A program made the position numbers and the translations under genes. From contig NW_021826976.1 in the NCBI RefSeq assembly GCF_006345805.1, positions 1 through 11,447 of the forward strand: a DNA stretch of 11,447 nucleotides, written 5' to 3'. The stretch's first letter is position 1, and every line of letters begins with the position of its first letter. Positions 6,609 through 11,375 of the stretch are shown in pieces. The notes under the pieces were generated by a model. It was not told the DNA's origin. It did not search any database and saw only the letters and a list, made by a program, of their open reading frames with translations. This DNA comes from Octopus sinensis. Lineage: Eukaryota.

Positions 6609-6727
6609 ATATATAGCCATATCACTTTGAAAACATCGGTTTTCGTCTGATCATCGAAGTTAAGCAACGTCGAGCCTGGTTAGTACTTAGATGGGTGACC
6701 GCTTGGGAAACCTAGGTGCTGTAAGCT
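6609..6727 (+). pseudogene. 5S rRNA: Full-length (119 nt) 5S rRNA-derived copy, probably a retroposed pseudogene or SINE3 head
   Basis: Ungapped 119-nt alignment to metazoan 5S (about 90/119 versus human 5S as recalled; several differences match invertebrate 5S as recalled). Box A agttaagcaacgtcg sits at +50 (6658) and box C tagatgggtgaccgc at +80 (6688); cctggttagtactt is invariant. Helix I has mismatches and there is no oligo-T terminator at the 3' end. Confidence 0.93.
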
Positions 6728-6790
6728 AAAGGCGGTGCTCCAGCATGGCTGCAGTCAAATGACTGAAACAAGTAAAAGTGTAAAAGAGTA
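6728..6790 (+). mobile_element. Family C SINE 3' tail fused to the 5S copy
   Basis: aaaggcggtgctccagcatggctgcagtcaaatgactgaaacaagtaaaagtgtaaaagag is nearly identical to the tails at about 8910-8968 and 10675-10735. Confidence 0.92.
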
Positions 6791-7094
6791 ACCGAGGATT
6801 GATATTTCCCGTGTTTCCATTTCCTTTGAACTGAATGAAATACGATGAAATTTCAGAAAGATTTCACTACTATTACTAGCAGGTCTTACGACCACATAGA
6901 GGCAAAAACCCAAAAAAAAAAAAAAAAGAGTAAAAAAATCACTTCCTGATTTACTAAGTTTAATGTTAGCAGCTGACGTCACCGACAGAATCGTAACATG
7001 AGGCGAGATAATGTCTTTTGTAGAGGACTACAATACGTGGATGTTTGGTGTTATTGTGTCCAGAAACCACGGCAACCGCAGCGGGCAGCAACGA

Positions 7095-8603: not shown

Positions 8604-8968
8604 AACCACATGGTTCCAGGTTCATTCCCACTGCGTGGCACCATGAGCAAGTGTCTTCTACTATAGCCTCGGGCCGACCAAAGCCTTGCGAGTGGATTTG
8701 GTAGACGGAAACTGGAAGAAGCCTGTCGTATATATGTATATATACGTATGTGAGTATATGTTTGTGTGTCTGTAATTGTCCCACCACCATTGCTTGACAA
8801 CCGATGGTGGTGTGTTTACGTCCCCGTAACTTAGCGGTTCAGCAAAAGAGACTGATAGAATAAGTACTAGGCTTACAAAGAATAAGTCCTGGGGTCGATT
8901 TACTCGACTAAAGGCGTTGCTCCAGCATGGCCGCAGTCAAATGACTAAAACAAGTTAAAGAGTAAAAG
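8604..8968 (+). mobile_element. Family C (tRNA/CORE-like) SINE, first 35 nt or so missing
   Basis: Colinear with 10323-10735 from aaccacatggttcc onward: B-box-like ggttcattccc, CORE-like gcaccatgagcaagtgtcttc, internal (TA/TG) microsatellite, tail ending aaagagtaaaaga. Confidence 0.92.
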
Positions 8969-9021: not shown

Positions 9022-9228
9022 TTTTATTACTTGTTTCAGTCAGCTGACTGTGACCATGCTGGAGCACCGCCTTGAAATTTTAGTCGAGTATATATATCCC
9101 AGTACTTATATTTTTTAAAGCCTGGTACTTACTTCATCGGTTTCAATTGCTAGGGAACACAAACACACCAACACCGATTGTCAAGCATTAGTGGAGGTGG
9201 TGGACAAACAGACACAAAGATACGCACA
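9022..9228 (-). mobile_element. 3' half of a family C SINE
   Basis: Minus strand tgtgcgtatctttgtgtctgtttgtcc..tgcttgacaatcggtgttggtgtgttt..aagtaccagg..ctcgactaaaatttcaaggcggtgctccagcatggtcacagtcagctgactgaaacaagtaataaaa. Confidence 0.88.
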
Positions 9229-9250
<22 letters not shown>

Positions 9251-9259
<9 letters not shown>

Positions 9260-9762
9260 AGTGTACATTTAAACACAAATGGGGTGACCCTAACAGGACA
9301 CCTTACATGCTAGAAGGAACAGTCAATGTCCAAACCACGGTTAAGAGCAATTTCGAAGGGAATGAAAAAAATTTACCTCCCGGACCTAGGTTTCGAAATT
9401 TCGAACTTTAATTAAAATAAAACAATTCGTTAGGCGAAGTTCTCATCAGCGGGAGAGGCAAAAATTTACATATAATTATGAGACAAAATAGCACATGTCT
9501 TATCTTTATATTATAATTTTTCAAATCCACCGCAAAAGTGCAGTTTTAGTCGGCAGCAAATAAAAATGTCGGCTTACTTTAAAATTACTAAATTGCTCTT
9601 AACCGTGGTTTGGACTTTGACTGTTCCTTCTAGCATGTAAGGTGTCCTATTAGTTTCACCTCTTTTGTGTGTAAATGTACACCAATTTTATATGACAAAA
9701 ATGTTGTCTATCGACTATATTATGCATGCTAGTCACTGGTAGAAAAAATTCTCTAACTTTTC

Positions 9763-9767
<5 letters not shown>
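9251..9767. mobile_element. Long-inverted-repeat (MITE/foldback-like) element, copy 1, carrying a hammerhead
   Basis: Arms 9251-9353 and 9590-9692 are reverse complements at 94/103 positions, around a 236-bp spacer. The right arm extends to ..ctacct|TA at 9767, as shown by homology with 11073-11154. The outer part of the left arm is missing. Confidence 0.88.
9377..9455 (-). ncRNA. Type I hammerhead ribozyme, catalytic core intact
   Basis: Minus strand CUCCCG (stem I, 9455-9450) - CUGAUGA (9449-9443) - GAACUU (9442-9437) - 28-nt loop - AAGUUC (9408-9403) - GAAA - uuuc - GAAA - CCUAG-GUC (palindrome ACCUAGGU; predicted cleavage between 9383 and 9382) - CGGGAG (stem I, 9382-9377). Stems I and II are perfect 6-bp helices abutting the conserved core. 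Confidence 0.85.
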
Positions 9768-9793
<26 letters not shown>

Positions 9794-10289
9794 CTAGCAG
9801 TATCGCCCGGCGTTGCTCGGGTTTGTAAGGGAAATAACTATATAAGCATTTTTAGAGAGTTACTTCCCTTATAGATGCCAATTCGGGCTTTCTTAGACAT
9901 TTCTGTTTTGGTGTCTTCAAGCCATGAAGTCGTTGTTCTAAAAGAACGCTGGTCTCCTTGACAACGCTTTACGACGTTGATTCCTTACAATCCCTTCCCC
10001 ACAGCTTCACGAGGGAGGAAGAAGGGGGAGAAGCAAACAGGTGCAGGTGTGACCATGGACGCCAACTCCGCCGCCATCGACACGAAAAATTATGCATTAA
10101 AATGGAATAAAAAATGATGTTAAATTATTTTTAAAATCGTAGACTCATCGTAGACGCGCGCTAATACGCAGACGGGCTCGATATGAATCACGACTTAAGG
10201 TACCCCCGAATTTGGTTAAACCTGCACCGCAAAATGTGGGAGTAGTTGAAATCTAAATCGAAGGGGACAGACACTCACAACAACTACAG

Positions 10290-10300
<11 letters not shown>
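9794..10300 (-). mobile_element. Non-autonomous Helitron (about 500 bp)
   Basis: Minus-strand 3' end: GC hairpin cccga-gcaacg-ccggg (9821-9806), 8 nt, then CTAG|T (9797-9794). The 5' end (tatataactgtagttgttgtgagtgtctgtc) merges into (TA)n, so the 5' TC is not visible. Confidence 0.75.
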
Positions 10301-10322
<22 letters not shown>

Positions 10323-10324
<2 letters not shown>

Positions 10325-10735
10325 CGCAGGAGTGGCTGTGTGGTAAGTAGCTTGCTTACCAACCACATGGTTCCGGGTTCAGTCCCACTGCGTGACAACT
10401 TGGGAAAGTGTCTTCTACTATAGCCTCGGGCCGACCAAAGCCTTGTGAGTGGATTTGGTAGATGGAAACTGAAAGAAGCCCGTCGTATGTATATATATGT
10501 ATATATATATATATGTGCGTGTATGTCTGTGTGTCTTGTGTTTGTCCCCCTAGCATTGCTTGACAACCGATGGTGGTGTGTTTATGTCCCCGTCACTTAG
10601 CGGTTCGGCAAAGAGACCGATAGAATAATACTCTGGGCTTACAAGAATAAGTCCCGGGGTCAGTTGCTCGACTAAAGGCGGTGCTCCAGCATGGCCGCAG
10701 TCAAGTGACTGAAACAAGTAAAAGAGTAAAAGAGT
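10323..10735 (+). mobile_element. Full-length family C tRNA-derived CORE-like SINE
   Basis: ggcgcaggag-TGGCTGTGTGG (A box)..GGTTCAGTCCC (B box), CORE-like block, internal microsatellite at about 10486-10535, 3' stem-loop cagtc-aagt-gactg and an (AAAAGAGT)2 tail. Confidence 0.93.
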
Positions 10736-10752
10736 ATAAATTCTTAATTTGA

Positions 10753-11154
10753 TTTTAGTAATTTTGAAGTATGCCGGCATTTTTATTTGCTGCCGAATAA
10801 AACTGCGATTGCGCGATGGATTTGAAAAGTTATAATATATACAGAAGAGAACTTCGCATAACGATTTCTTCCTTTTTTTTTTTTCTTTTTTTTGTTTTGT
10901 TAATTAAAGTTCGAATTCTAGGTCCGGGAGGTAAACATTGTAAATTTTTTTTATTTTTCAGCCCCTTTCGAAATTGCTCTTAACCGTTTTTTGGACTTGA
11001 CTGTTAATTCTAGCACGTAAGGCGTCCTGTTATGGTCACCTCTTTTGTGCATAAAGGGACACTAATTTTATATGAAAAATATAAAATATATAGTCTATTG
11101 ACTATTTCATATATGCTAGCCACTGGTAGAAAATTTTCTATAATTCTCCTACCC
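10753..11154. mobile_element. Inverted-repeat element, copy 2, opposite orientation, one arm only
   Basis: 10756-10840 is the reverse complement of about 9505-9590; 10842-10970 of about 9354-9449; 10971-11154 is a full-length arm ending ..ctaccc|TA. About 55 bp of the spacer is deleted relative to copy 1. Confidence 0.88.
10842..10930 (+). ncRNA. Degenerate orthologue of the 9377-9455 hammerhead
   Basis: cagaaga (U4 to A) - gaactt..aagttc (stem II intact) - gaat (A15.1 to U) - tctagg-tc - cgggag. The 5' strand of stem I is deleted. Confidence 0.7.
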
Positions 11155-11225
11155 TATATATAATATATATAGTATATATATATATATATATATAGATAAT
11201 ATATATATATATATATATATATATC
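11155..11225. repeat. (TA)n microsatellite
   Basis: Visible directly. Confidence 0.95.
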
Positions 11226-11375
11226 ATATGACGAGTTTTCTTTCTTTCAGTTTCCGTGTACCAAATCCAGTCACAAAGCTTTGGTCGTCCCTGGTCTATT
11301 CCATGCAGTGGGACTGAAACCGAAGCAATATAGTTGACAAGCAAGCTTGTTACCCCACACAGCCACACCTGCGCC
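11226..11375 (-). mobile_element. 5' half of a family C SINE (internal deletion in the CORE-like block)
   Basis: Minus strand ggcgcaggtgtggctgtgtgg..aagcttgcttg..ggtttcagtcccactgcatgg..gaccaaagctttgtgactggatttggtacacggaaactgaaaga..cgtcatatg, stopping at the internal microsatellite. Confidence 0.88.

Follow-up and report, generated by a model that had tools for sequence, protein, structure and literature searches.

The minus strand of the 11.4-kb window (by which we mean the whole stretch of DNA that was analysed, 11,447 nt) carries at 9455-9377 a type I hammerhead ribozyme sequence that belongs to a dispersed repeat family and is not there by chance. We consider it probable that this motif is the hammerhead of an ORF-less, non-autonomous retroelement of about 461 nt that is organised like a Penelope-like element (PLE), and that the copy in the window is a decaying relic of such an element. 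This would add a cephalopod-like genome to the animals that have hammerhead-bearing, PLE-style non-autonomous retroelements.

The hammerhead motif and its locus

Read on the minus strand, the motif has the order CUCCCG-CUGAUGA-GAACUU...AAGUUC-GAAA-UUUC-GAAA-CCUAGGUC-CGGGAG. Stem I pairs CUCCCG (9455-9450) with CGGGAG (9382-9377) over 6 bp, the core segment from C3 to A9 is CUGAUGA (9449-9443), and GAACUU (9442-9437) makes up the 5' strand of stem II. The two GAAA boxes allow two registers. In register 1, AAGUUC (9408-9403) completes stem II on the 3' side, the GAAA lies at 9402-9399 and stem III is weak (A-U, U.G, U.G, U-A); in register 2, C11.1 is at 9395, the GAAA at 9394-9391 and stem III is ACCUAGGU at 9391-9384. 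C17 is 9383 in both registers, and the predicted cut falls at 9383/9382 either way. A preliminary description of this DNA had claimed a full core with 6-bp stems I and II, a palindromic stem III, 8 extra nucleotides that create two GAAA registers with the same cut, and a DNA palindrome. Direct reading of the minus strand agrees with it at every position of the core and of the two stems, as well as for the stem III palindrome and for the palindrome TTCGAAATTTCGAA at 9405-9392; the two registers with their common cut also stand, as a reading of the sequence.

The window copy thus has all of the type I core (C3 U4 G5 A6 N7 G8 A9, G12 A13 A14, A15.1-U16.1 and an H17 that is not G) and three helices around it, with helix I open-ended. 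The box pattern CTGATGA..GAAA..GTC has a single match in the window, where 0.02 would be expected by chance. The preliminary description had also proposed a comparison with the Rfam model Hammerhead_1 (RF00163), and the model aligns with 9455-9377 from end to end, in register 2 (31.3 bits, E 2e-6, obtained only with a 151-nt region searched alone), but the score is under the gathering threshold of 34 bits. Rfam scans of the whole window, with gathering as well as E-value thresholds, and a scan of six loci found no hammerhead, the motif being dropped by the filters, and recovery of the family hammerhead by Rfam worked only on pieces of 140-150 nt. Among the family members tested, the window copy has the best score; of two relatives, L010 reached 21.9 bits and L022 gave no Hammerhead_1 match, and the window copy outscores them because its stem I is perfect. 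The family as such is below the Rfam threshold and is lost by the Rfam speed filters because its helix II is very long, so that routine annotation would miss it.

The motif is part of a larger insertion, the components of which are as follows (unit positions refer to the 461-nt family unit described below):

9226-9256: (TA)n microsatellite, adjoining the 3' end of the minus-strand copy
9237-9592, minus strand: 5'-truncated family copy, unit ~252 to 461 and on to 156 (parts A, hammerhead and X); the inverted partner, with inverted repeats I1 and I2
9377-9455, minus strand: type I hammerhead motif, with CUGAUGA box, long stem II, two GAAA boxes, stem III ACCUAGGU and C17 at 9383 (direct reading and RF00163)
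9392-9405, minus strand: palindrome UUCGAAAUUUCGAA from a private, duplication-like 8-nt insert, the placement of which is ambiguous within 9392-9405
9590-9772, plus strand: upstream, pseudo-LTR-like part of the plus-strand copy, unit ~45 to 234 (I1, 91%)
9773-10740: (TA)n and then unrelated inserted repeats that interrupt the plus-strand copy, including a tRNA-type SINE at 10314-10721
10741-10841, plus strand: part A of the plus-strand copy (I2, 86%)
about 10842-10935, plus strand: copy 2, a dead hammerhead relic (direct reading)
10936-11166, plus strand: parts X and P, the 3' end of the plus-strand copy, ending CCTACCCTATAT (sequence comparison)
11167-11226: (TA)n-rich microsatellite, adjoining the 3' end of the plus-strand copy

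The minus-strand copy (9592 to 9237) is about 82% identical to the family consensus and meets the plus-strand copy head to head, with a 3-nt overlap. The parts that the two copies have in common are 91% and 86% identical, and subfamily-A markers occur in both; as far as sequence comparison goes, this agrees with one composite insertion that has decayed since. PLEs are known for pseudo-LTRs that derive from partial tandems, for an inverted 5'-truncated copy beside the upstream pseudo-LTR and for a (TA)n bias (PMC8557442), and the window shows a partial tandem, an inverted 5'-truncated partner and a microsatellite target. The intact-looking hammerhead is the one that sits in the truncated inverted partner. 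In copy 2, on the plus strand, U4 is changed, GAAA has become GAAU, the 5' strand of stem I is lost and loop 2 has a T-rich expansion; it reads ACAGAAGAG instead of the GCUGAUGAG of the window copy, and GAAUU instead of GAAAC. Because its core is changed and the 5' strand of its stem I is gone, this second hammerhead is dead. The ORFs in the 11.4-kb window are low-complexity or SINE read-through, and none lies in the 461-nt unit.

Unit position ~45 (AAATTGCTCTTAAC) is the common start of five independent copies (window 9590, L055, L068, L079 and L086), four of which have this start where two copies meet head to head, which hints that template switching or joining favours this position. A repeat starting CTAGCAGTATCGCCCGGCGTTGCTCGGGTTTGTAAGG is found after (TA)n directly behind a family copy at two independent loci (window 9791-9830 and the 3' flank of L068) and may be a further element that targets (TA)n. 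The assembly of the 11.4-kb contig is rich in microsatellites and SINEs. A tRNA-type SINE is present in the window at 8604-8964 and 10314-10721, and between 3150 and 5400 there are at least seven diverged copies of another SINE-like repeat (...TTTCATCCTTTCGGGGTCGATAAATTAAGTACCAG...), in direct orientation and with irregular spacing. The "5S rRNA" at 6609-6795 (RF00001, 90 bits) is joined at 6726 to the 3' tail of that tRNA-type SINE; since this 5S-plus-tail composite is itself dispersed (at least 40 scored copies of 2800 candidates, 81-90% identity), it is a 5S-derived SINE and no 5S gene.

The repeat family and the conservation of its ribozyme

The family is dispersed over the 2.72-Gb assembly in hundreds to about 2000 fragments. 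The query made of part A and the hammerhead gave 636 candidates, the best 40 of which were scored and have 77-87% identity; for the X-P query the best 55 of 1849 candidates were scored, and the strict two-box pattern has 33 matches in the genome against 0 for the reversed control. Our census of copies rests on 87 loci. From these was derived the unit of 461 nt (32% GC), employed solely as a coordinate system, in which position 1 is the nucleotide after GUC and the parts follow one another in the order X (1 to ~160), linker and P (to ~250), A (to ~390) and hammerhead (393-461). Two apparent "tandems" of 957 and 771 nt, in L003/L004 and L029/L030, were rejected as the family unit; they are local segmental duplications that include a SINE.

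In the source elements the ribozyme was under constraint: its core is better conserved than its surroundings and its stems contain compensatory changes. In 31 copies that were picked without the use of any core pattern, conservation is 96.5% at the 13 core positions and 86% in the other columns (permutation p<1e-4), and 20 of these copies retain every core nucleotide. In an alignment of 52 copies, 85.9% of the cells at the hammerhead pairs are paired, a value that drops to 20-47% when the partners are slid by 1-3 columns. Cells in which both partners have changed number 33, compared to 16.5 in shuffles, and not one of 500 shuffles reaches the observed value. The window subfamily (CUCCCG/CGGGAG) differs from the others by an A-U/U-A exchange at pair 7-90, by the replacement of a mismatch with C-G at pair 8-89 and by a G-C/A-U exchange at pair 31-51, which is in the second 6-bp helix within the long stem II. 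The double changes of stem I at pairs 10-87 and 11-86 were discounted, because these are two mutually pairing CpGs and CpG decay alone can mimic compensation. Stem I of the major subfamily is weak (3 bp, a mismatch, 3 bp).

Each of the stem III variants ACCUAGGU, ACCAUGGU and ACCU(N)AGGU is self-complementary; paired with itself, it scores -8 to -11 kcal/mol. The segment composed of 15.2-16.2 and loop 3 is accordingly palindromic in the family, and the palindrome is still present in 28 of the 52 individual copies. A palindromic helix III is listed as characteristic of hammerheads that work as dimers (PMC4209133).

Other hammerhead-like sequences came up in the genome. Seven compact hammerheads (42-48 nt) pass the RF00163 threshold. 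Two of these seven, at G000:C16:25146363-25146408 and 25146794-25146839, are 431 nt apart on one strand and resemble a different tandem hammerhead repeat; the remaining five are at five further places. The unrelated locus L033 (G000:C2:127983578-127983595 region) has the boxes CUGAUGAG...CGAAAUUUCGAAAC...GGUC and no convincing stem I.

The 8-nt insert and the predicted fold of the window copy

Compared both to copy 2 and to all of the 51 relatives aligned, the window copy is longer by 8 nucleotides. An exact 18-nt string across the insert occurs once in the 2.72 Gb of the genome. Matches to this string with one mismatch number 5, versus 9 for a reversed-pattern control, and we have rejected them as family members; they are unrelated sequences that occur at the chance rate. 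Being single-copy in the genome and lacking in the relatives, the insert arose after the insertion of the element and was never copied onward. The two GAAA registers, which the preliminary description had taken for a functional feature, thus come from a private insert that has no counterpart in 51 relatives.

The predicted folding of the window copy points in the same direction. Nearest-neighbour energies are -9.4 kcal/mol for register 1, -2.3 for register 2 and -3.5 for a bulged hybrid of the two, against -17.9 for the MFE structure; the native ribozyme folds are therefore predicted to lie 8.5-15.6 kcal/mol above the MFE. The distal part of stem II is degraded, the predicted pairing probability of stem II is near 0, and the insert makes a hairpin of its own (UUCGA/UCGAA, predicted P 0.4-0.7) that competes with the native fold. 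For a subfamily-A sequence without the insert, the predicted MFE structure contains the native stems I and II. Such energies take no account of tertiary contacts, and hammerheads can cleave from minor conformers; register 1 may hence give some low cleavage activity in vitro. On balance, the duplicated GAAA is a mutation exclusive to the window copy and probably harmful to the ribozyme. It is most likely that the two registers are an accident and no designed feature, and that the window copy, having gained a private 8-nt duplication and lost part of its distal stem II, is a relic in decay that cleaves itself weakly or not at all.

The preliminary description had called the copy "intact", and it could be imagined that the window holds a working hammerhead, acting as a monomer through register 1 and as a dimer through register 2. 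All of the core nucleotides are indeed present, stem I is perfect, register 1 has a perfect 6-bp stem II, the 31.3 bits of register 2 are the best Rfam score among the family members tested, and the palindromic stem III could dimerise (-11.4 kcal/mol). We nevertheless hold this to be unlikely. The insert on which the two registers depend is unique in the genome and found in no relative, so that it has never been propagated; the native folds are 8.5-15.6 kcal/mol above the MFE while the insert forms its own hairpin; and the sole neighbouring copy is dead and on the opposite strand, which leaves no tandem partner in cis. The word "intact" also fits poorly with what the copy is, namely an old, 5'-truncated fragment, about 18% diverged, with a degraded distal stem II and a predicted misfolding.

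Copy ends, mechanism and relation to known systems

The ends of the copies were analysed in 102 non-redundant segments. Their 3' ends fall mainly at two sites, unit 151-180 (46 of 102) and unit 226-255 (33 of 102), both of which are TATAT stretches. (TA)n comes directly after the 3' end in 25 of 47 and 25 of 33 cases, respectively, and other simple repeats are frequent in the remainder. The 5' starts are scattered, as expected from 5' truncation, with 11 of 102 in unit 1-15 where 3.3 would be expected; L018 and L022 begin at the very nucleotide after GUC, adjoining a microsatellite. Among the copies that reach the upstream cleavage site, 7 stop within 15 nt of it and 4 read through, the background chance of stopping near the site being ~10% by a rough estimate. 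Some copies extend beyond a single unit, the longest reaching 834 nt, so that part X becomes a terminal direct repeat, and head-to-head junctions with an inverted 5'-truncated copy are present at 27 of 67 loci, as opposed to 1 tail-to-tail junction.

The excess of 5' ends near the cleavage site fits a template with a ribozyme-made 5' end, and it is the only, and indirect, sign of cleavage; based on few copies, it could equally reflect a stop of the reverse transcriptase at the structured ribozyme or a transcription start. In most copies a hammerhead that was not cut lies upstream of the 3' end, so that cleavage is at best partial, and partial cleavage has been reported for PLE hammerheads in vitro (PMC4209133).

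A PLE-like mode of propagation could bring these features together. The source elements would be transcribed through more than one unit, and the hammerhead, perhaps acting as a dimer via its palindromic stem III, would cut after GUC and thereby define the 5' terminus of the RNA template. Nicking of (TA)n and priming on the internal UAUAU stretches would be the work of a PLE reverse transcriptase/GIY-YIG endonuclease provided in trans. The window would represent one composite insertion into a (TA)n tract, in which the minus-strand copy is the inverted 5'-truncated partner that kept all of the core nucleotides and, after insertion, would have gained its private 8-nt duplication and lost part of its distal stem II. 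It is possible, although we put this forward only tentatively, that the combination of 5' ends clustered at or just after the GUC cut, 3' ends at UAUAU joined to (TA)n and a seemingly obligatory head-to-head partner is a record of PLE-type hammerhead use. If this is true, cleavage sets the 5' end of the retrotransposition template, with priming by microhomology with the nicked (TA)n target, and the copies provide in vivo evidence for a PLE-hammerhead role that the literature still calls unclear. The clean end structure of the family makes it usable for testing what PLE hammerheads do.

With respect to the proteins, no ORF for a reverse transcriptase or an endonuclease was found in physical linkage with the family. 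Weak GIY-YIG ORFs beside two family copies were rejected as part of the family, for they have no DNA in common. PLEs are present in the genome: a GIY-YIG ORF beside one copy of the hammerhead family belongs to a group with at least 150 scored members (of 18562 candidates), with 95-100% amino-acid identity (most 97-99%), open frames that reach 811-850 aa and many (-)/(+) pairs lying head to head at distances of 1-5 kb. This PLE family is young and the hammerhead family old (77-90%), and no DNA is common to the two; owing to the large difference in age it is not established as the partner. One of its copies (L037:432-902) ends in (TA)n; the 3' UTR of the young PLE copy in L037 contains no CUGANGA..GAAA box.

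The same end data bear on the idea that the family is a true animal non-LTR retrozyme, propagated by tandem transcription, cutting, ~461-nt circles and reverse transcription. The type I hammerhead, the 32% GC and the want of an ORF would suit such an element, as would the 5' ends that are at the cleavage site and the two hammerheads spaced 461 nt apart in the arrays L043, L081, L020 and L048. However, these four are the arrays with two hammerheads in the sample of 87 loci, where no array exceeds 1.8 units and most copies fall short of a single unit. The 3' ends, moreover, are at unit 156 or 245, away from the cleavage site (1 of 102 ends in 451-461), and the unit of 461 nt compares with 170-400 nt for published retrozymes (PMC7229834). 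We therefore regard a retrozyme as improbable. Less probable still is a SINE-like element moved by a LINE with the hammerhead as a passenger, an idea that has been put forward for the Sm-alpha hammerhead repeats of Schistosoma. In favour of it are the small size of the element, its lack of coding sequence, its dispersal, its 5' truncation and its simple-repeat tails. Against it, neither poly(A) nor a LINE-type tail is present, conservation of the core exceeds the background, and head-to-head pairs at 40% of the loci together with partial tandems are PLE hallmarks.

If the family is, as we favour, a non-autonomous PLE-style element, its PLE architecture without an ORF makes PLE hammerheads and animal non-LTR retrozymes its closest kinds. 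Kinship with these two had been suspected from the motif alone, and the family context bears it out. Full-text literature searches yielded no paper describing a hammerhead-bearing PLE-style family in a cephalopod; the giant-squid genome paper gives 235 Rfam Hammerhead_1 matches (PMC6962438). Compared to the RF00163 model, the window copy aligns over the full length of the core and three helices, whereas loop 2 of the family has 38-44 nt and that of the model about 10.

Animal non-LTR retrozymes resemble the family in being non-coding and low in GC, in having a type I hammerhead and in occurring alongside PLEs (PMC7229834; Li et al. 2026), and they have been argued to be non-autonomous PLE derivatives themselves (Li et al. 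2026, bioRxiv 10.64898/2026.07.22.740005). Published retrozymes have units of 170-400 nt in dimers to large multimers, while the family has ~461 nt and occurs as fragments or at most 1.8-mers; unlike retrozymes, it also has PLE-style inverted partners.

The pseudo-LTRs of PLEs typically contain hammerheads (Cervera & de la Pena 2014, PMC4209133). Like that of the family, these hammerheads are of type I, with a long helix II, a G10.1-C11.1 pair, a short open helix I and a short helix III of palindromic sequence (PMC4209133); they too are situated in a terminal repeat that results from partial tandem insertion and form heterogeneous consensus families within a genome. The differences are that the family has no RT/EN ORF between its repeats, coding for neither RT nor GIY-YIG, and that its helix II is bipartite, with a ~36-nt spacer holding the second 6-bp helix. 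In contrast to the PLE min-HHR, moreover, there is no unpaired nucleotide between A9 and G10.1, A9 being followed directly by the G10.1 that pairs with C11.1, and helix III is not absent but present with 2-3 bp.

As to insertion, Naiad is a PLE clade for which a (TA)n preference has been reported; unlike the family, it is without canonical hammerheads (PMC8557442). The elements of Craig et al. (2021, PMC8557442) are coding and 3-4 kb long, whereas the family is non-coding, but their mode of insertion is the one that we see here: partial tandems, an inverted 5'-truncated copy at the upstream repeat, and insertion into (TA)n.
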